A program made the translations under genes and the position numbers. DNA of 55,283 bases, counting the filler, from Platydemus manokwari (taxonomy: Eukaryota), in NCBI GenBank assembly GCA_037951405.1. It is 5 parts of 5 records of this genome, joined end to end, with 100 filler letters (N's around TTAATTAATTAA, not from the genome) between each part and the next. Parts side by side here need not be neighbours in the genome. Positions count along the whole stretch, not along the records: positions 1 to 11,500 come from JBBMOY010642209.1; 4 more parts are not named here. One strand, written 5' to 3'. Every line of letters begins with the position of its first letter. Positions within the stretch are counted from its first letter, which is position 1. Of the stretch, positions 1 to 11,500 are shown one piece after another. Under the pieces are notes generated by a model that saw only the letters and a program-made list of their open reading frames with translations, was not told where the DNA came from and ran no database searches.

Positions 1-2571
1 ATAAAAATATGAATTTATTTATTATATATATTTACATTGATATCCAGCACATTTACATACATACATACATATATACTTCTATCAGATTGTACAACCATTT
101 CACATTTAAATTTATTTAAGTTAAAGAAGCAGTGTCAATATCTTAATTTATTTATGTTACTGATTTCAATTTCTTTGCTTTAATTCTTCTGACAGAAATT
201 GGAATGCAAAATTCGAAACTTAATATATACTTAAATCGATCTGAGTGAGCAAGTAAAACTGTGAGTAGCTATGTAAACTTTGAGTTCATTAAACTCGGAT
301 ACAAACACATGTGAAATGTGTAGAAAATGTATGATTTGTTTCATATTTAAAACTCCTACAGAGGATTTTCAATAATTATCGGAAAAAATTATTAACATTT
401 ATTATTTGATGAGGATAATTCTATATAAGAACCAACGAGAAGTTAAATTCTAATCTTAATTGGAATTGATTGTTAATATCGAATTCGAATGATTTATTAT
501 TTGAAATATAAGTTAACTAGACCTCAACATTTGAATTAGATTTGTATCTTATAATATGAATTTATTGTTACATTATGTTTGTTATTATAACTTATCAATA
601 CAAAATAAAACTATTTCAGAAATTTATCAATATAGAAGACAATTGAAGTTGATAATTGCAAATGACATCAGATAAATAGGTATCAAATTCAAATTCTTCC
701 AATAAAGTTAAATGCCCGATGGTATCATATATAGCTTATATTCTGGAAAGTTTTGATGTGTTTGGTTTAACATTTCAGAGCAATTTAATCAAAAGAAGAC
801 AATGTTCCATGTTTCCAAAAGTAAATTATTATGAAGTGAACATCAAGTCTTGTTATTCAGATAATGAAGATGTGCTGAAAATATTTTTCATGATCGTGAT
901 CTATAATCTCAATAAAATGAACAAATTACGTCGAAAGAATGTGTTAACGAACAAAGAAAATTGAATTCATCATTCAACAATGTCATTATATATATATATA
1001 TATTTCGTTTGGGATTTTAGGCTAGTACCAGTGGAATTCTATATTTTTACTAAGACGAAGTTTAGTAATAAGTATAACTTTATTTTATTCAGTGATATCA
1101 ATTAAAACGTAATTGTAACAAACTTGTTCAGTAAATTTTGCTAATTATAATTACCCTGTGTGATGGCACAACTTCTGGTTTGCAAACAAAACTAAATGAT
1201 TACAATTGCTGACTTCCAAACAATAACTATATAATGAGAACAATGATAATATTGCGGTATCAACGTGTGATTTGTCGTTACAATTATTTCGAGTAGTTTC
1301 AACGAAAAAGTACAACAAAAAATTCGATTTACCAGTGTGCAAGATAGAAGAATCGATTATATTGGTGTTTGAAGATACAAGATATTTACATAATACGGAA
1401 ATATTTTGACTTCAGGAACAAATGATAATTTACTGAATAATTCGAACCGAATTTATATTTCTATAAATGCCACCAATTAAAACCTTTAACAGTCAACGAA
1501 CGCCGATCACATTCCTTTTCAATTTCGATATTCAATGTCACTTATAAAGGCTACAATATCATGTACTGAGAATTAATTATTTACAAATTTAGAACTTGGT
1601 TTGTTATCGAATGATTTTCTAGTCTAGTTATCAATAATCAAATATATAGGCTGCGTCTTAGTCAGCAACGTAACTCTGTTTATCCGATTACTATTTTTAG
1701 TCAACTTTTATTTTCGATTCGAGATTATTTTATTATATTTGATTTATTATTTATTAACCGCTTCATTGTCGTTAACTTATATTCGTCTTTTTATATTTAT
1801 CTTATTATAATTATTCGAATTTATTATTGTATTGAATGGACGATTCTAACAAGTTTATTCAAAATAAAATATAATTTTAGACTACATATTCATATCGGAC
1901 TGGGATAAAATAAAATTATAACATGAATGAAACATGGAATAGAATATAACAATAGTGAAAGAAAACAAAAACATGAAAGTTTATTACTAAGAATAATGAA
2001 CATTAATATTATCATACAAAACCTAGAGTGGCAAATGATATTATCAAATGGTATATATTTATTAAAAGATATCACGTGTTTTGAAAGTCCACAGATGATA
2101 TGTGTTGTATTATTGATTCAGATAAACAAATGGGATATTATTTAGATGAATAACAAATGAGACTCATTGGCCTTGAATCTTGGTTTTATAGGACGTTATT
2201 GTATTGATTAATTAAACCAATATTTATAGAATAAATTGGCATACTGTATTTCTTCTGGAATTTTTTGAAATCTTCTGACAGACATAAGATTCTGGCTGGT
2301 TCCACTGAAAACAATGTTTGAAAAATTGAAATACTCATTAATGAATATGTTCATGAAAAAATTATTCAATACTCATTTTAAATTTCGTTTTTAAACAGAT
2401 AAGAATAATTTAATTCTGCTTGGCGTTGTCGACCTTTTCGTATAGTTTGAGATTTGCACCAATTTAATCATACTTTCTCTTGTCTTATCTCTTTCTTCTT
2501 TTTATATTCAGGTAGGGCATCTTTACAGTGAACTTAATTTTTATATACTTATTTGCCTTTTTTAGTTCGAG

Positions 2572-2670
2572 ATAATAATAATAATAATAATACAAATGAT
2601 AATAATAATGTTATAAGAATGTAATAATAATATAATATAATAATGATAATAATATAATATAATAATATTG
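2572..2670. repeat. (AAT)n / (AATAT)n low-complexity microsatellite
   Basis: Direct reading: ataataataataat...aatataatataataat. Confidence 0.8.
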
Positions 2671-3504
2671 ACAATACCCTTCATCAAAAAGATTTATAAA
2701 CACTTAATCTCAAAAATGTTAAGTCATTGTCTAAACAAACATTCTGAATTTTTGTTTATTTAAACGTGCAATCAAACAGTCTGAAGAATTCAGACTCTAA
2801 ATTGATGAATTTCTCTCTAAGATTAATCAATAAAATCGCATAGATTGTCTTAAATATTGTTAATTATGTTAATAAATAATTTACAGTTTCAAAATGAATT
2901 TGATAATCTATTCAATGTGACTTTTATTGCTAAATCTAAAGTCAGACACTGAATAACTATCTATGACAACAATCTATCTGCAATTGTTTTATTTGATCAA
3001 TGTTTGAAGGCTGTATTGATCTGAAAATCACGGTGACATTAGTAATGATAAATCTCAAATAAATAATACATCTGCTTATGCAGAGCATGTATCACACACA
3101 CTGTCGCATACGAACGGTCGCATTTCAATGCGCTAGTTTTTGGAATTAATGAACAATGACAAAAAGCGATCGATAAATGTGTTTGTGTGTGCGATGTACG
3201 ACAATAGCAAGAACTCATTGAGTAGGTTCAGATGAGTAAGTTGCTAGATTGATACACAAATATAATGAAATTTACTTTGCACACCGGATCTCATAAAAGT
3301 CAATTCCATTGTGCATTTGTGCATTCTTTCAAAATCTGTTTCATTAATCTATTTTCAAAACTTTTCGCTTTTGATTTAATAAGAAAAATAAGAATTTTCT
3401 AAGGTTAGTTATTGATTGTTTTGACTAAATATCGATTAAAATACGTAAAACCCACCGTTGAACATTTATCCTTTTTTCTTTTGAATCTAGTTTGATTTTC
3501 GAAT

Positions 3505-6500
3505 ATGGCTCTCGAAGATCCAGATCAAACGAGATTGAAATACATTCAAGTATGAAAGATAGATTTTGTAATGGGATTGATAAAATTAATGGTTTTATTT
3601 TCATCTTAGTCTTCGATACAAACGGTATCGTTTTCCTGCTCCCATACAGCGCTATTATTGGAAAATGATCATCAAGCTGCACTGAAGGCCGAGATAGAAG
3701 ATATCGAAAATCTAATAAAATCATATGTAAATGGATTATGAAATATATTCACATATAACGTATATATTTTTTTGTTAAAGGATAATTCGGAATCACAGAA
3801 AGATCTAAGTGATATTGAATCAATAAAAGTAATATATAAACTTGGTTTATTTTCTGTAAATTAGCTACTTTCAATTTTCAGGAGAAAATATCATATAATC
3901 AAGAAGATCTTGAATTTTTCGATTCAATTTCGTCATTGGAAGAATTATTTTCGGTAAATTCTTTGCGTTCTTTCATGGTTTCAATGGTTTATTCAATAAT
4001 ATTTTTGTTTCGTTCAGCAACTAACAACTCAAATAGCTGATAGGGCTTTAAAAGATTCCATGGTTTCTACGACGACAAATTTCGAGTCTGATGTAATTTT
4101 ATTATATAATATAATATAATCGAATTTTTAAACAATCTTATTATTCAGCGCGCACCATTACCCAAAGTGAAACAATGTTGGAATCAAATTGTCCTTTATT
4201 CCGAATTAGCTTCTATCCATACAAAAGATGCAGCCGATTATCATAAGGTGATTGCATTTATTGATTTTTAGCATTGTTTCAGAAACTTTTAATATTTTAA
4301 ATCAACCTACAGGATAAAAATAAAAAGTAATAATTTTAATTTATTTCAGTTCTACCACGAATGTTCCGAAATCAGGCGTCTTATCGAAAGAAGATGGCAA
4401 TTCACTTCAAAGTCATTAAATAACCTACACATCAAAGGAATAATGAAAGATGCGAAAGAAATAATAAAGATAACCAAGGTAAATTATTAATCAGTTTTTT
4501 TAAAGTGAGTACTTTAATAAAAGGAATCAACAATTGATTTACAAAATCTGGCTGACCAAATCAATAATCTCAAACGTAGATGTTCGTCAATTGTTCCAAT
4601 TTATCTTCGAACGAATCCCATTGCCGATCAAGGAAAGAAAGCCTTATTATTAGCTGATATAAAGATCGGTGATTTACAACTGAAAAAAGGAGACCATGTA
4701 ACAATATTGGATAATTGGGGCAAAGATGGAGCAACAAATAGAATTTCAAATGCTTCCGATATAACAACAAATCGAATTAATTGGTTAGTAGAAACGAAAT
4801 CTGGAGATAAAGTACTCCTTCCATCTGTGACGCTCTGGATTCCAGGTCCTGATTCTGAGACGGCTTTGGTTTTAAATGAGTTAGTTTGCGTCTGGTTTTG
4901 ATTATTAATGTTACCATTATTTATTTAATTACGGTTTTCTTTTACTAAGCTGAATCCATAGTAACACAAACAGGATTTTTCAACTACTGAAAAATATAGC
5001 GATATTAAATAATTATCAATATGTTAAATGCGTAGGAGCAATTTTTATTTGCAACACAAGTAACAAAGTAAATCAATGATTGAAACTTTCTAGTTCTAAA
5101 TTCTGAAATTTCATTTCAAATAATTTATTCACATTTAAACAAACAAATCTTTAAAATTTTGATAAAAAAATTTCGTTTGATTGCAAATATGTACATCATA
5201 TAACGATTTATACATTATCAATCCAAAAGGTTACACTNNNNNNNNNNCTGCACAAGGAATAGAGAATGTACATATTCATCAAGAAAGAATACGATTCTAT
5301 ACTTAGATGAATATGAATAAATTCGTGATTAATATTTAACCAACAATTTCAAATTATCACGCACTGATTGGCTAAAGTTTAGAGGTTTTTAAATTTGTTG
5401 AATGTATTGCAAAAACCTATATAGTTTACTTAATTATAAAAACATTTTTGAATTTTTTATTTAAGTATTTAATAAGAATTTTAGTTATTTGAAATAATAA
5501 ATTAAATAGATTAGAGCTTCAAAATTTGATTATTCGAAAAATGGATCAAATTAAGTTGAATAGCAATTTATTGAAAATTAACGAGGACCCATTTTTTTAA
5601 TATTGGAAACAAATTGACAAATATTCTCAATTTTTAAAATTAATTTATAAAAATAAGCAAGAATATTACAAAGCACGTCTGTAGTTAACTAACTCGATTT
5701 ATAATTAAAAAATTAAATTTAAAAACTCAAATAATCGTATAGAAGTGTTTTGATTAGAATAGGAACTTGGTTTGAAAATTATGTTTTGTTCCTATTTGAT
5801 CTCATAAAAAGTGAGATATTAAATAAGCCATTAAATTAAATTATAAAATAATTTCATGCACGAAAATTCGTAACGAAAGTATGTCAAAGGACCCTTTTTC
5901 TTAACTTAATCCTACTGATGTTTAGAGGCATAACAAATTTTTAAAATACTTCATTTCAAATATGGGGAATATTCAAGCCATTCTCACAGCTTTTTTTTTA
6001 CTGTACTTTGTTATTTTTCTAGATTACACAATCAACTCAGTACTGCATGGATGGAGTTGAACGAATTATTGAGAGAAACAATATTACAATACTATCAAAG
6101 CCTATTCAAACAGATCATATCGAAAAAACAATATTCATCTAATAACAAAGAATTATTATTGAAATTGACAGAAAGTGTTTCGCAATTGATATCGATGGGA
6201 GGATCCGAATCTATTAACGTTGAGGAGTTCCAACGTGATATGAAAACTATCGAGAAAATGGAAATTCGAAAAGATGGTATACATTAATATTTATAATCAG
6301 TTTATAATTCTAAATTCACGTAATACATTTTTGTAGTTTTGAATAAATTATTGAACAAATAGCCGAAAAACAATCACATTGGCACTACGAGCCAGAACAT
6401 TTTTGCTGGAATAATAATTGTTAAAATAATATGATTATTTTCGTTCTAAATCCATTGTAATAAAAGTGTTCAATTTGATCACAGTTCAAGGTTGAAAGAA

Positions 6501-9500
6501 ACCTAATTGTTGAAGTCATTTCATTGAGGAATGTTTTTCATTGTTAGAAATATAAAAATCGTCTCGATTCTCGAAATACTGATGGTATTCGGTATTCATA
6601 TATAATTGGCTCCCGGAGTATGTGCGAAAGTTAATGTGTTAATGAATTTTAATTTATGGTAATAAATAAATTAAAATTCATTAACATATTAACGGTGTTT
6701 TATTTGTTAAATTTCTCGAGAGATAGTTAAATCGTATTTATTATATGGAAATATGCACGGTTTTTGGATAAATATCGATAAAAATCCAACTAACAAATTC
6801 AGTATGAACAATTGAATTGAACGACATTTTGTAAATAAATAACTTGTAATACGGAATCATTTAATTTATATAAACACCATAAAAATTAAAAAAAAATTAT
6901 TTTCATTTAGCACCAGCACTATCCGAAGGTTTTTATTTGAGGAGACAAGATCTGGTAATATTAAATGAAATCATGACAAAATTTTCAGTAATTTGATTAT
7001 TTTTTAAAACCAAATATATAACTTTAAACCGCTTGTAACAGGTAATGATTCAACATCGTAAATATCTTACAACGACAACCTTAACTGTTTTGGATGAAGA
7101 ATGGAAATCGTCGATAGAAACCAATTTAAGAGTGGTGAATGCTTTGGGGAATTTACAGTAAAATTAAAATGAAACGATTTGATATTTTAATATTTATTTT
7201 CAGAGAAATGCAGCACAGAAACAAAAATGAATTGAAACTCATATTGCAACAAATCGAGATGTGGAAACAAGGTACTTTAAGTGCTTCAATTCTAAAGGAA
7301 TATACCAGATCACATTCTCCTGAATCAATGAGTTCAAGTGATGGTGATAGTGAATATCAGCCTTCAAGTCTGCCACGTGAAAGTCGATTACCGGTACAAC
7401 AAAATCAACTCACTGAAATCAATGTTTATTGCAATAACGAATTGAGTGCAAAATCTTCATTTGATAGAATGTTTAACGAAATGTTCGTGTCTAGTGCGAA
7501 TATAGATAAAGATATGGAGCTAGAATCGCAAATTGTGAGTTATGATTCAGGCCAATTATTTAAGTCGAGAAAGAAGTTACAATTGAAACCATATTGGGAT
7601 GGAAACAATTTGAAAATAACATACTTCGAGGTAGCTCCAGTTGTAGATGGATATTCCTCTTCGGATGAAGAAATATTGGAAAAGACAGAAATAATTTCAA
7701 CTCAACAGGCAATAGACTCAGGTGTTGAAAAAATTGACAGCCAAGTTCAGATAGATATAAAATATGAACAGGATGAGGAAGAAAAATATCTTACGGGAGA
7801 TAAATTAAGAGAAGTTCAGGATATCGAAAATTTTATAGAAAGAAATATTTCGTTGGGGAATTTACAAATACTAATGAAAAAAATAAATTCCCATTTATCG
7901 AAATCAACAACATCTACTCCATGTCAAACTGATAGAATTAAAAAGATTGAAACGACTTCAATTAGAGATATTATTACTGAAACCATCAAAAGAGATGAAC
8001 TGGCAATTCTGATGAAAGAAATAAATTCTCGATTATCCAAATCCACTACTTCAAGTCAAACTGATAGAATTAAAAAGATTGAAACCGTCTCGATTAAGGA
8101 TCTAATTTCAGAAACAATCGATAGAGATGAACTAGCAATTCTGATGAAAGAAATAAATTCTCGATTATCAAGATGTACTACTTCAAGCCAGACTGATAGA
8201 ATTACAAAGATTGAAACGACTTCAATTAAGGATTTAATTTCGGAAACACTCAATAGTGATGAACTGGCAATTCTGATGAAAGAAATAAATTCTCGATTAT
8301 CCAAATCTAGCACTTCATGCCAAACTGACCGAATTAAAAGAATAGAAACCACATCAATCAAGGACTTTGTATTGGAAACAATCGATAGAGATGAACTGGC
8401 AGTATTAATGAAAGAAATAAATTCTCGATTATCCAAATCCACTACTTCATGCCAAACTGATAGAATTAAAAAGATTGAAACCGTCTCAATTAAGGATCTA
8501 ATTTCAGAAACAATTGATAGAGATGAACTAGCAATATTAATGAAAGAAATAAATTATCGATTATCCAAAACAACTACTTCATGCCAGACTGATAGAATTA
8601 AAAAGATTGAAACATCTTCCATAAGAGACCTCATTGCAGAAATCACTGAAAGAGATGAACTTCCAATATTAATGAAAGAAATTAATTCTCGATTATCAAA
8701 ATCAACAACTTCAACTCAAGTCGATGAATTAATCGTAAGTTCAAAATCCAGTTTAAGTAGAAGTGAAAAACCAAAAATTTATGAAGACGCTTGTTTTGAA
8801 TTTTCACCCATTAAAGCCGCAATGAAAGAATTTGGAACTGCAAGTACTGATAAAATAAAGCACAAGTATTTCCAAAAATCAACTGAATGTAAAACACAAG
8901 ATGAATTTATCAGAGATCTCGAAATAAAGAGTATTTATCAAGAAGATAGAATAAATTATAATTCAAAATTATTGACTTTTGCTGGCCCAAAATTCGTAGA
9001 CAAATATTCTGAATATAAGACTAGATTGATTGATTGTTACAATGAATACACGATTAGAAGTGAAGATTATATGGTTGACGAATCGATAACATTATACGAA
9101 TCAAGTATGGATGTTTCAGGAATTGAAACGAAAGAAATATCATCAAGTTATGAAATAAGTTATTGCTCCACTGAATGTGAAATTACCGATAACGTTGAAG
9201 AAATTATACAAAAATCTCAAGAAAAAGAAGAAAGTTCAATTGTAATGATGGAAGATGAAAGGGTATTCAATGAATTATCAATGAATGATATCAGTACAAC
9301 AATGGAAGTGAAAATGATTGATACTTATGATTCAATGTCAATCGAATATATGGAATATAACGATGATCACAGTAAACGAGAAATACACGAAGATAAATCA
9401 TTTGAGACAGAACCGAGAAAATTGAAAATGATGGTTGTAACATCGGAGATAATAAAATGTAGTGTGGACATTCAATTTGATGGACTGAAGAAAGATACAT

Positions 9501-11500
9501 TCGAGACAGGATGGGAAACAGAAATGGAAACAAGAGAAACCGAAAATCAATATGAAGTACTTTTATTTATATTTAAAATACATTACATATATGAATTGAT
9601 TTCTTATTATAACCGTTATTTCTAGCATGAAATCTGTATAACCGTATGACTTTGATTATGGAGTACTATATACTACATACTATTATGTTCACTTTTTAAA
9701 ACTTATGTCCTCGCTGATAAAAATGGTATAATGTACATTTTTAGTATCTTCTACATCAATGGATATGAAATATATGGAATCTCATTGATTATATATTACT
9801 TATTGTCTGTGAACTTGCTTATACAATAATCTTTTGTGAAAAAGATTGGTTATATAATCCAGTAATTTACAATCATAAAATATTTCTCAATACCTATCTT
9901 CAGAAATTTTTTTCCCATTAAGATAAAAAGTTAACTGGCACGATTTCGATCGATAACGTAATGTCAACCATTATTACCCATCGTTTATTTATTTTTAAAA
10001 TTATTTTTATCAGTTCCTAATGTTAATGGCAATTTAAAAATTCAAAGTTGTTTATCAAAACATTTTCTATTTTAAAAATGATGTTTAAAGGAAAACAGAC
10101 ATGGATTTAATAAAGAAATGTTTGTCAAATAATGGATTGATGTATATCCCATAAATATGTCTTTCTTACACGTTAACGGGTGCATTAATATTGACTTTAT
10201 AATAAATAATATGAAGCCATATCTAACGAAAATATATATGAATGGAAAATGTAATATCATAAAATTCTGAAATTATATTTATATTATTAAAAATGTCCTA
10301 TAGTACGAGTTGTAAATACGTGATATTTTTGAAGATTTGTAAATGTCAAATATAAAATCACAAGTAAAATGAAATCAAAGGATCTACATTAAGGTTTGGG
10401 TTTATTAATACCATACAAGTCAGTTCTAATGTTTAATATATTTAAATAATTTTATTGGTTGATTTTGATGTTCTTATATAAGTCTTTTAAAAAATAATCA
10501 CAAGAAATATTATTTATTAAACAATTGTAATCCTATAAAACGAGCACTACCAATTAAAAATAAATATATAAATAATAATATAATATTCTTATATCAAATT
10601 TATTTTATAACTAAAGATAAATTCTGTCGATAATTCTTTTGATTTAAATGAAGTTATTGCATAATATTATTAAAATTTATTTCATTTGAAGGTGATATCA
10701 GAAGATATAATGACAGAAACTGATGCCATCATTCTAGCAGATACAGTTCATGAAACGAATATTAAATTCTCCGATATTTGTAGTGAATTCAAATTAGAAA
10801 TTGTCGATGTAAACAATTTACATTCAATCGAAAGTTCACAAATCTCAATAATCCATGATGAGAAAGAAGATGAAACTGATGCGACTCAATCAATTGAAAA
10901 GATTACAATAGATGTAAGTACAGATGTTTTTGGATTGAGAGAAATGAATTGTAAAGAAACAATGACATCGATTGATTTGAGTAAAACGTTAAGAAACGAA
11001 GGTGGAGAATTCGTTTGTGAAGTCATCAATATTGATACTCAAGTGGAAATAAATTTCGAAGAGAAATCATTGGTTCATGATGTTGTGAAATTCCATGAGA
11101 AATATTCTGAATACAATAGTAAATTGATAGATTGTTCAAATGAATACACGATTAGAAATGAAGAATTTTTGATGGATAAATCGATGAGATTGTGTGACTC
11201 AGGTATGGAGGTATCAGGAATCGAAATAAAAGATGTATCAACGAGTTACGAAATAATTTATTGTACAACTGAATGTGACATTGGAGAAATGGTAGAAGAG
11301 ATGAAACTAGAAGTAAGTGAAAAAGAGGAACGATCGGTTGTGATGATGGAAGATGAAAAGGTGTTCAATGAATTATCAATGAATGATATCAGTACAACAA
11401 TGGAAGCGGAAATGATTGATATATATGATTCAATGTCAATCGAATATATGGAATATAACGATGATCACAGTAAACGAGAAATACACGAAGATAAATCATT
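3505..11500 (+). CDS. Multi-exon gene: truncated plakin-domain (spectrin repeat + SH3) protein with long acidic, repeat-rich tail; 3' end lost in assembly gap
   Basis: Hand-spliced GT-AG exons keep one open frame: 3505-3549, 3610-3726, 3781-3828, 3882-3953, 4018-4092, 4149-4247, 4350-4478, 4524-4879, 6023-6276, 6911-6954, 7042-7157, 7204-9556, optional 9626-9643, 10692->11500. An in-frame TGA at 3493 precedes ATG 3505; probable 5'UTR intron 3404-3490. The peptides KQCWNQIVLYSELASIHTKDAADYHKFYHE and LKRRCSSIVPIYLRTNPI..KALLLADIKIGDLQLKKGDHVTILDN..WLVETKSGDKVLLPSVTLWIPGPD match the plakin spectrin-repeat/SH3 pattern of desmoplakin, plectin and dystonin (W..L....E.HL...A.Y.QF; IV.LKPR..ALCDYK...KGD...L.DN..W.V....G....PSV...IPPP). 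Confidence 0.85.
4524..4879 (+). CDS. Exon 8 of the plakin-like gene: plakin-type SH3 domain
   Basis: Open frame from AG acceptor at 4523 to GT donor at 4880; contains ALLLAD..KKGD.V..LDN..W.VE...G....PSV..WIPGP. Overlaps track ORF 4707-4901. Confidence 0.85.
5390..5911 (+). mobile_element. Dispersed non-coding repeat, copy A (probable non-autonomous DNA transposon), in intron 8
   Basis: Aligns by eye with the reverse complement of 19536-20102 and with 42952-43172; all three share the end GTCAAAGGACC(C)TTTT.TT.ACTT. Confidence 0.7.
6630..6693. repeat. Near-perfect 28-bp inverted repeat with 8-nt loop in intron 9
   Basis: Left arm GTTAATGTGTTAATGAATTTTAATTTAT (6630-6657); right arm ATAAATTAAAATTCATTAACATATTAAC (6666-6693); one G.T pair. 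Confidence 0.85.
7204..9556 (+). CDS. Giant exon 12 of the plakin-like gene (S/T/E/D-rich tail with 44-aa repeats)
   Basis: Lies inside the 828-aa track ORF. Acceptor tttattttcag (7203) and donor gtactt (9557) are phase-compatible with the flanking exons; the ORF's first ~22 and last ~22 residues are not part of this exon (other frame or intron). Confidence 0.85.
7838..8725 (+). repeat. Coding tandem repeat, 132-bp / 44-aa unit, about 6.7 copies
   Basis: Unit ETIDRDELAILMKEINSRLSKSTTSCQTDRIKKIETTSIKDLIS; the GATGAACT anchor recurs at 7994, 8126 and 8258 (period 132). Confidence 0.95.
10692..11500 (+). CDS. Exon 13 of the plakin-like gene, truncated by gap
   Basis: Acceptor ttcatttgaag at 10691, phase 0; ORF open to the N-run; its last ~137 aa duplicate a block of exon 12. 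Confidence 0.8.

Follow-up and report, generated by a model that had tools for sequence, protein, structure and literature searches.

The window analyzed here is a stretch of 55,283 nucleotides (nt), filler included, from the genome of the flatworm Platydemus manokwari (assembly GCA_037951405.1), of which positions 1–11,500, the whole of contig C642209 (JBBMOY010642209.1), have been examined. From 3505 to the contig end at 11,500, its plus strand carries 13 exons encoding a plakin-type head followed by a long repetitive tail. Plakins link adhesion complexes to the cytoskeleton and, to our knowledge, have been little studied outside vertebrates, flies and nematodes. As developed below, this locus is probably the 5′ part of a plakin gene which is restricted to flatworms and devoid of CH domains, and which associates a short plakin head, a middle region built of repeats and a probable plakin-repeat-like end.

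Organization of the Gene

The gene model was read from the sequence and then checked by script for splice sites and phases. Every intron is bounded by GT..AG and the phases are consistent throughout, splicing being deduced from the sequence itself and from cross-species comparison. Most introns are 45–102 nt long, with three longer ones of 634, 1,135 and 1,143 nt. Exons 1 to 11 encode a head of ~452 amino acids (aa), while exons 12 and 13 encode a visible tail of at least 1,053 aa, for a total of ~1,505 codons. An earlier note on this DNA had described a switch, after about 450 aa, to more than 1000 aa of acidic and Ser/Thr-rich repetitive sequence; these lengths bear out that description, as does the tail composition (Asp plus Glu 19–25%, Ser plus Thr 17–21%).

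The N-terminal helical part of the head is encoded by a series of small phase 0 exons with GT..AG introns, namely exon 2 (3610–3726), exon 4 (3882–3953), exon 5 (4018–4092), exon 6 (4149–4247) and exon 7 (4350–4478), which follow a short first exon (3505–3549) whose start codon is at 3505. Exon 8 (4524–4879) covers the last part of a spectrin-repeat helix, then an SH3 domain of the plakin type with an insertion of ~20 aa, and the first part of the next helix. After a long intron 8 (4880–6022; GT at 4880, AG at 6021–6022), the head continues beyond the SH3 domain with exon 9 (6023–6276), exon 10 (6911–6954) and exon 11 (7042–7157), all with canonical sites and with mutually consistent phases (2/1/0). 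The tail begins with exon 12 (7204–9556), a single open frame of 2,353 nt (784 aa) whose acceptor at 7203 closes a 46-nt intron, and resumes after a predicted intron 12 (9557–10691; GT at 9557, AG at 10690–10691, phase 0 on both sides) with exon 13 (10692–11500), which is still open at the contig end.

The exon structure of the head is supported by comparison with other genomes. A word search with exon 8 retrieved three open reading frame (ORF) fragments from related organisms, with 74–86% identity, and two of their genomic contigs, L003 (from a Logan assembly) and L004 (from an ENA assembly), have been aligned with positions 3161–4899. Exons are 68–95% identical in this alignment, with the exception of exon 3 (3781–3828; 48 nt, phase 0), whose 50% identity is the lowest of the compared exons, whereas introns are 50–67% identical and contain indels. 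Exon 1 shows 80% identity to L003 without indels, its ATG being conserved. No real indel is found in any exon relative to L003, the only two gap columns lying at the end of exon 7 because the AG is ambiguous at the position where L003 lacks intron 7. Substitutions relative to L003 occur at rates of 0.19, 0.08 and 0.40 at the first, second and third codon positions, respectively. The loss of intron 7 in L003 is exactly at the boundary of exons 7 and 8 (4478|4524 in the window; ~1740–1790 in L003), where a single open frame runs through, and it thus fixes this junction without RNA. The only public run which holds the stretch, X1, is a DNA run, since its contigs run through introns.

The Plakin Head

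The assignment of the head to the plakin family starts with exon 8. In searches and folds run exon by exon, each exon being its own query, it matched Pfam SH3_10 with 34.3 bits, above the cut-off of 22.8 bits, and the match is in two stretches, which implies an insertion of ~20 aa in the SH3 domain. Its AlphaFold (AF2) model has a mean predicted local distance difference test (pLDDT) of 61, the best-modelled SH3 blocks reaching 79–84, and shows a helix followed by the SH3 strands. When this model was compared with the PDB using Foldseek, desmoplakin (3r6n, E 1.9e-4) and plectin (3pe0) were the best matches, above generic SH3 domains. At the level of sequence, phmmer and a four-sequence profile of exon 8 returned from the PDB sequences marginal plectin and desmoplakin matches only (E ~0.3), amid DARPin noise; the fold comparison and the trematode profile were therefore required.

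A profile of the head built from seven trematode relatives (see below) connects this exon to the rest of the gene. Searched against the PDB, this profile retrieved plectin 3pe0 (E 1.5e-12) and desmoplakin 3r6n (E 8.4e-6), the alignments covering helices, the SH3 domain and the following helix. The exons of the window are colinear on the profile, starting from position 23: exon 2 maps to 23–51 (E 0.049), exon 4 to 69–91 (E 0.075), exon 5 to 98–108 (E 0.52), exon 6 to 120–148 (E 8.5e-10), exon 8 to 200–271 and 326–362 (E 4.4e-18), exon 9 to 370–445 (E 0.003) and exon 10 to 456–467 (E 0.038). The part of the profile which can be aligned with PDB structures begins at ~119–120, corresponding to exon 6 and to about residue 120 of the protein, in agreement with the start some 120 aa ahead of the plakin region given in the earlier note.

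Collectively, the SH3_10 domain, its position between spectrin-repeat helices, the structural matches to 3r6n and 3pe0 and the colinearity on the profile identify the head as a true SH3/spectrin-repeat module of the plakin type, as the earlier note had recognized. Its expectation that both SH3 and spectrin profiles would match, and in the N-terminal part only, holds for SH3_10, which is found in exon 8 with no counterpart in the tail, but not for spectrin, as none of the exons, searched singly, matched a Pfam spectrin model. No cytoskeleton-binding module of the kind found in plakins (CH, plakin-repeat or GAR/GAS2) has been recovered in the visible ~1,505 aa.

The 5′ End and the Missing CH Domains

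The start codon (3505–3507), which the earlier note had already placed after an in-frame stop, is preceded by an in-frame TGA at 3493, four codons upstream, with no AG between the two; hence, there is no acceptor through which a reading frame from further upstream could enter exon 1 before the ATG. The 100 nt preceding the ATG are poorly conserved, with only 45% identity to L003. Further upstream, a block at 3150–3400 on the plus strand is 69% identical to L003 in short motif-like stretches and contains indels which are not multiples of three, features that suit a promoter or a 5′ untranslated region (UTR) and not an exon; this block is therefore a candidate promoter or 5′UTR.

None of the 104 CH matches found in the genome is located on contig C642209, including the 3.5 kb upstream of the ATG. 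The tandem CH domains which characterize the N-terminus of spectraplakins are thus absent from the gene model and from the upstream DNA of the contig, consistent with the earlier claim that the protein has no CH actin-binding domains and with the absence of upstream CH-domain exons on which that claim depended.

Continuity Between Head and Tail

Two places might be suspected of breaking the gene, the assembly gap in intron 8 and the junction between exons 11 and 12. The gap (N's at 5238–5247) adjoins a high-copy dispersed repeat, which explains the break in the assembly: the depth of X1 words, followed over 5248–11247, is 6,600–77,000 over 5248–6047, the last bin reaching 25 nt into exon 9, compared with ~14 elsewhere. 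A 401-nt probe of this repeat detects 3,462 or more candidate copies, 77–86% identical to it, across the genome, and no clear terminal inverted repeats were found in the intron 8 copy. On the family profile, exon 8 ends at position 362 and exon 9 starts at 370, and in the alignment of the profile with plectin the end of the SH3 domain runs straight into the next helix, with a conserved Trp. As the two exons are consecutive, no coding sequence appears to be missing and, as judged from this alignment, the coding sequence appears continuous across the gap.

The evidence which joins head and tail is indirect. The predicted intron between them measures only 46 nt, with canonical sites and matching phase, and a single X1 DNA contig spans 5883–7952 without a single difference. 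A head followed by a long open frame is also found in a paralogue located on another contig of the genome (C1949160, locus L013; minus strand, ~9425–2), which has the same small head exons, an SH3_10 match of 48.4–48.9 bits and, after the head, one uninterrupted frame of 1,925 aa or more that extends past the contig end. In this paralogue, the tail contains a recurring short Thr-Gln-Ile/Leu-Gly-type motif; it has no Pfam domain and its sequence is unrelated to the tail of the window gene. A GvpH match in it was rejected as a pile-up of repeat scores. Similarly, the gene encoding the Clonorchis sinensis protein GAA54713 (L023, on DF143916.1), which extends over ~59 kb, consists of small head exons, a 4-kb exon encoding residues 581–1923 and a last exon.

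The Repetitive Tail

Exon 12 starts with a conserved block of ~100 aa, which is followed by seven repeats of 44 aa (7835–8758) and by a first super-repeat unit of ~300 aa (~8720–9556). The 132-nt period of the 44-aa tandem repeat was scored at 6.4 copies by Tandem Repeats Finder (TRF), and seven copies are counted by eye. An orthologue of 836 aa (P0004) is 50% identical to exon 12 over the first 530 aa. The super-repeat units recur one per exon: exon 13 contains the second one, which shares 71% aa identity with the first (8993–9400) over the 136 aa where they overlap. Diverged units of the same ~300-aa type, 33–34% identical to those of the window, occur on two short contigs of the genome, C1960780 and C1842779. 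On the latter, one super-repeat unit per exon is followed by an intron, the same layout as in the intron 12 region, and its first and last 77 nt are identical (period 1,193 nt), which identifies it as a tandem array of exon–intron units that has collapsed.

A comparable collapse terminates contig C642209. The X1 depth rises to ~35 at 9266–9543 and at 10708–11247, compared with a baseline of ~14, and one X1 contig joins 11247 back to 9221. These data show that the contig ends inside collapsed near-identical units and that the gene continues beyond it.

Searches of the tail exons against Pfam returned no spectrin, Plectin, GAS2 or CH match and no credible domain, so that the claim of a visible tail without recognizable rod, spectrin array, plakin repeat or GAS2 domain stands. 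Two Pfam families, COS (38.7 bits, with no single stretch passing) and PGAP1, were rejected as score pile-ups caused by the seven 44-aa repeats of exon 12. ESM Atlas gave no usable match with the whole tail exon and the conserved block, and the AF2 model of a super-repeat unit has a pLDDT of 29, a value which conveys no confidence and makes the model unusable for a fold search.

Relatives in Flatworms

Among 1.84 billion representative proteins, 16 matches were obtained at E 0.001 or better. Two of them (P0005 and P0007, which are TPR/STAND proteins) are spurious, and one is an Echinostoma caproni protein named SLD5 by UniRef, which probably stems from a mixed gene model. The remaining named matches are all hypothetical proteins of flatworms, from the trematodes Schistosoma japonicum, S. 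mekongi, C. sinensis, Dicrocoelium dendriticum, Paragonimus species, Opisthorchis viverrini, E. caproni and Fasciola gigantica and from the monogenean Cichlidogyrus casuarinus. As all named family relatives found are flatworms, the lineage-specific character proposed in the earlier note is upheld. Most of these proteins have been automatically named “Desmoplakin SH3 domain-containing protein”, and their only Pfam match above or near the cut-off is SH3_10, located at ~aa 220–260 in full-length models; they have no CH domain. A literature search found no paper on flatworm plakins.

The mapping of the exons on the profile indicates that the N-terminus of the window protein coincides with that of most trematode models. 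Indeed, tblastn showed that the N-terminal offset is common to most of these models within a few residues, the C. sinensis model being ~30 aa longer. In addition, the best match of the D. dendriticum protein P0010 in the P. manokwari genome is exon 8 of the gene described here.

The trematode and monogenean proteins (for example, S. japonicum KAH8859897, C. sinensis GAA54713, D. dendriticum CAH8547376 and Cichlidogyrus KAL3313496) resemble the window protein in having a CH-less colinear head at a similar offset, an SH3_10 domain split by an insertion and, after the head, a long Ser/Thr-rich region free of domains, which in C. sinensis, as in exon 12 of the window, is carried by a giant exon directly following the head exons. 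They differ in several respects. Head identity is only ~20–30%, the SH3 insertion is ~75 aa long in these proteins (within the SH3 exon in C. sinensis) compared with ~20 aa in the window, and the tails are unrelated in sequence. Furthermore, the conserved C-terminal domain described in the next section is a feature of the trematode proteins, not seen for the window gene.

The C-Terminal End of the Family

The three long trematode members, P0021 (2,400 aa), P0013 (2,344 aa) and P0010 (1,577 aa), have in common a C-terminal part of ~310–380 aa (~1980–2287, ~1860–2228 and ~1162–1469, respectively) which is conserved with 34–36% identity, and in C. sinensis the last exon holds this conserved domain. 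The region scores 19.5 and 16.1 bits with Pfam Plectin, just under the cut-off of 20.5 bits, and its motifs line up one by one, in register, with those of a P. manokwari plectin-repeat ORF (pairwise E 1e-6), which itself matches Pfam Plectin with 156.8 bits. This ORF is part of a canonical plakin locus on contig C1378091 (L012/L021), where an SH3_10 exon (3114–3278) is accompanied by spectrin-like exons and by a long frame open from 6227 onwards; the genome therefore also has a conventional plakin. Six other contigs of 260–466 nt (C1435223, C22079, C1407733, C209153, C1868837 and C1146356; L015–L020) each encode typical plectin repeats. None of them could be attributed to a particular gene, and they illustrate the severe fragmentation of repeat-rich plakin genes in this 911-Mb assembly of ~2 million contigs.

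The conserved trematode C-terminus implies that the visible tail of the window gene, which the earlier note took for a non-plakin tail, is most likely the variable middle of the protein. On the basis of these alignments, the layout of the family would most likely be a plakin domain, a variable middle and a small plakin-repeat-like end, which would most likely correspond to the plan of desmoplakin and BPAG1e with the rod replaced by repeats. A plakin-type C-terminus may lie beyond the end of the contig.

Comparison With Known Plakins

Several well-known plakins, among them desmoplakin, envoplakin, periplakin and BPAG1e, have a plakin domain at the N-terminus and lack CH domains. Like them, the window protein has an N-terminal plakin domain with an SH3 domain inside a spectrin repeat, no actin-binding domain and a long middle region, and among known structures its exon 8 comes closest to desmoplakin 3r6n; a possible plakin-repeat end is seen in the trematode relatives. 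In contrast, its head, which corresponds to about three repeats as judged from colinearity with 3pe0 and 3r6n, falls well short of the ~1,000 aa of the plakin domain in plectin and related proteins, its middle consists of acidic Ser/Thr-rich tandem and exon-sized repeats instead of a recognizable coiled-coil rod, and sequence similarity to vertebrate CH-less plakins is marginal outside the SH3 region. With plectin and the spectraplakins (MACF1, dystonin, Shot and VAB-10), the window protein shares the plakin SH3/spectrin core, but its visible part has no CH1–CH2, EF-hand or GAS2 domain and no recognizable spectrin-repeat rod. The unusual architecture put forward in the earlier note is therefore retained in part: the protein is CH-less and belongs to a flatworm-restricted group, but a plakin without CH domains is not in itself unusual and the long trematode members end with a plakin-repeat-like domain.

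The plakin domain of such a protein would, on the model of plectin, BPAG1e and desmoplakin, dock it to membrane adhesion complexes. The repetitive region would replace the rod and act as an extended spacer or scaffold, probably disordered for the most part, and the protein would probably end, as its homology with the trematode members of 1,577–2,400 aa suggests, in a small plakin-repeat-like domain engaging cytoskeletal filaments.

Weighing the Interpretations

The reading we favor as the probable one, a CH-less plakin gene of flatworms with a repeat middle and a plakin-repeat-like end, has several points to its disadvantage. The C-terminal domain of the trematode proteins is sub-threshold in Pfam and had no PDB match in profile or single-sequence searches, and neither the last exon of C. 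sinensis nor whole trematode proteins found a counterpart in the P. manokwari genome, although the sensitivity of these searches was low given the number of contigs. Within the gene, exons 9 to 11 match the family profile more weakly than exons 6 and 8. All junctions other than that of exons 7 and 8 are defined by sequence signals and comparison, the sole public run being DNA; for the junction of exons 11 and 12, cross-species support is lacking, and a word search for related-species contigs spanning it, for which the initial 165 aa of exon 12 served as query, returned nothing. As for function, anchoring at junctions is proposed purely by analogy, and the view of the tail as a disordered spacer is a guess, the pLDDT of 29 of its unit giving no guidance.

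Three other explanations have to be considered. The gene might encode a plakin head joined to a wholly non-plakin tail, made of lineage-specific repeats only and ending without any cytoskeleton-binding C-terminus. This would account for the absence of known domains both in the 1,053 aa of visible tail and in the longer tail of the paralogue, for the failure of searches with the last C. sinensis exon and with entire trematode proteins to reveal a counterpart in the genome, and for the unrelated sequences of the tails of relatives and paralogue, which indicate that tail content can turn over freely. However, the three long trematode members keep a plakin-repeat-like C-terminal domain, several tiny contigs of the genome contain unassigned plectin repeats, the contig stops inside a collapsed repeat before the real end of the gene, and the negative searches used single distant queries against ~2 million contigs; we thus regard a tail devoid of any plakin element as unlikely. 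A second possibility, to which we give still less credit, is that the locus belongs to a conventional spectraplakin, of which it would represent an internal portion or a short isoform, CH exons located beyond the contig splicing past exon 1. Plakin genes of other animals are known to use distant alternative promoters and the contig offers just 3.5 kb upstream of the ATG, but exon 1 is conserved as coding, with an in-frame stop and no acceptor ahead of its ATG and a conserved non-coding block just upstream, and most trematode models begin without CH domains at a like offset. Moreover, no CH match is present on this contig or on that of the paralogue C1949160, and the canonical plakin of the genome occupies a separate locus on C1378091.

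It is most improbable that head and tail belong to two neighboring genes or were brought together by a scaffold mis-join at the N gap. The close spacing, canonical sites and matching phase of exons 11 and 12, together with the X1 contig which covers 5883–7952 without a difference, argue against such a fusion artefact, even if the second codon of the tail exon is a Met at which the orthologue P0004 is recorded as starting and if this junction has no independent support. With regard to the gap, its proximity to a high-copy repeat would favor a mis-join, but exons 8 and 9 follow each other on the profile and, as in plectin, one helix extends from the former into the latter. In addition, the paralogue and C. 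sinensis likewise show a head followed by a giant exon.

The gene, its paralogue of like layout and the trematode and monogenean relatives define an uncharacterized, flatworm-only subgroup of plakins, in which a minimal plakin domain is combined with repeat regions that evolve very rapidly. More tentatively, one can envisage a flatworm plakin branch, possible though far from assured, in which a plakin domain of about three repeats with its SH3 domain is followed by hypervariable, species-specific repeats which replace the coiled-coil rod, built by tandem duplication both of whole exons (~300 aa) and of 44-aa units, with paralogues of one genome differing entirely in their tails. Proteins of this kind might serve as structural components, specific to the lineage, of the sites at which the flatworm epidermis or tegument is attached; if so, they would bear on the anchoring of flatworm surface epithelia, including the tegument of the parasites. 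Because short-read assemblies break at giant repeat exons, genes of this type have probably been annotated in truncated form.

Other Features of the Contig

An Rfam scan of the window returned no match. The stretch is AT-rich, with a GC content of 22–33% along its length, and an AT-rich microsatellite (ATA-type, period 3/11/22) is located at 2572–2667, in the intergenic region upstream of the gene.

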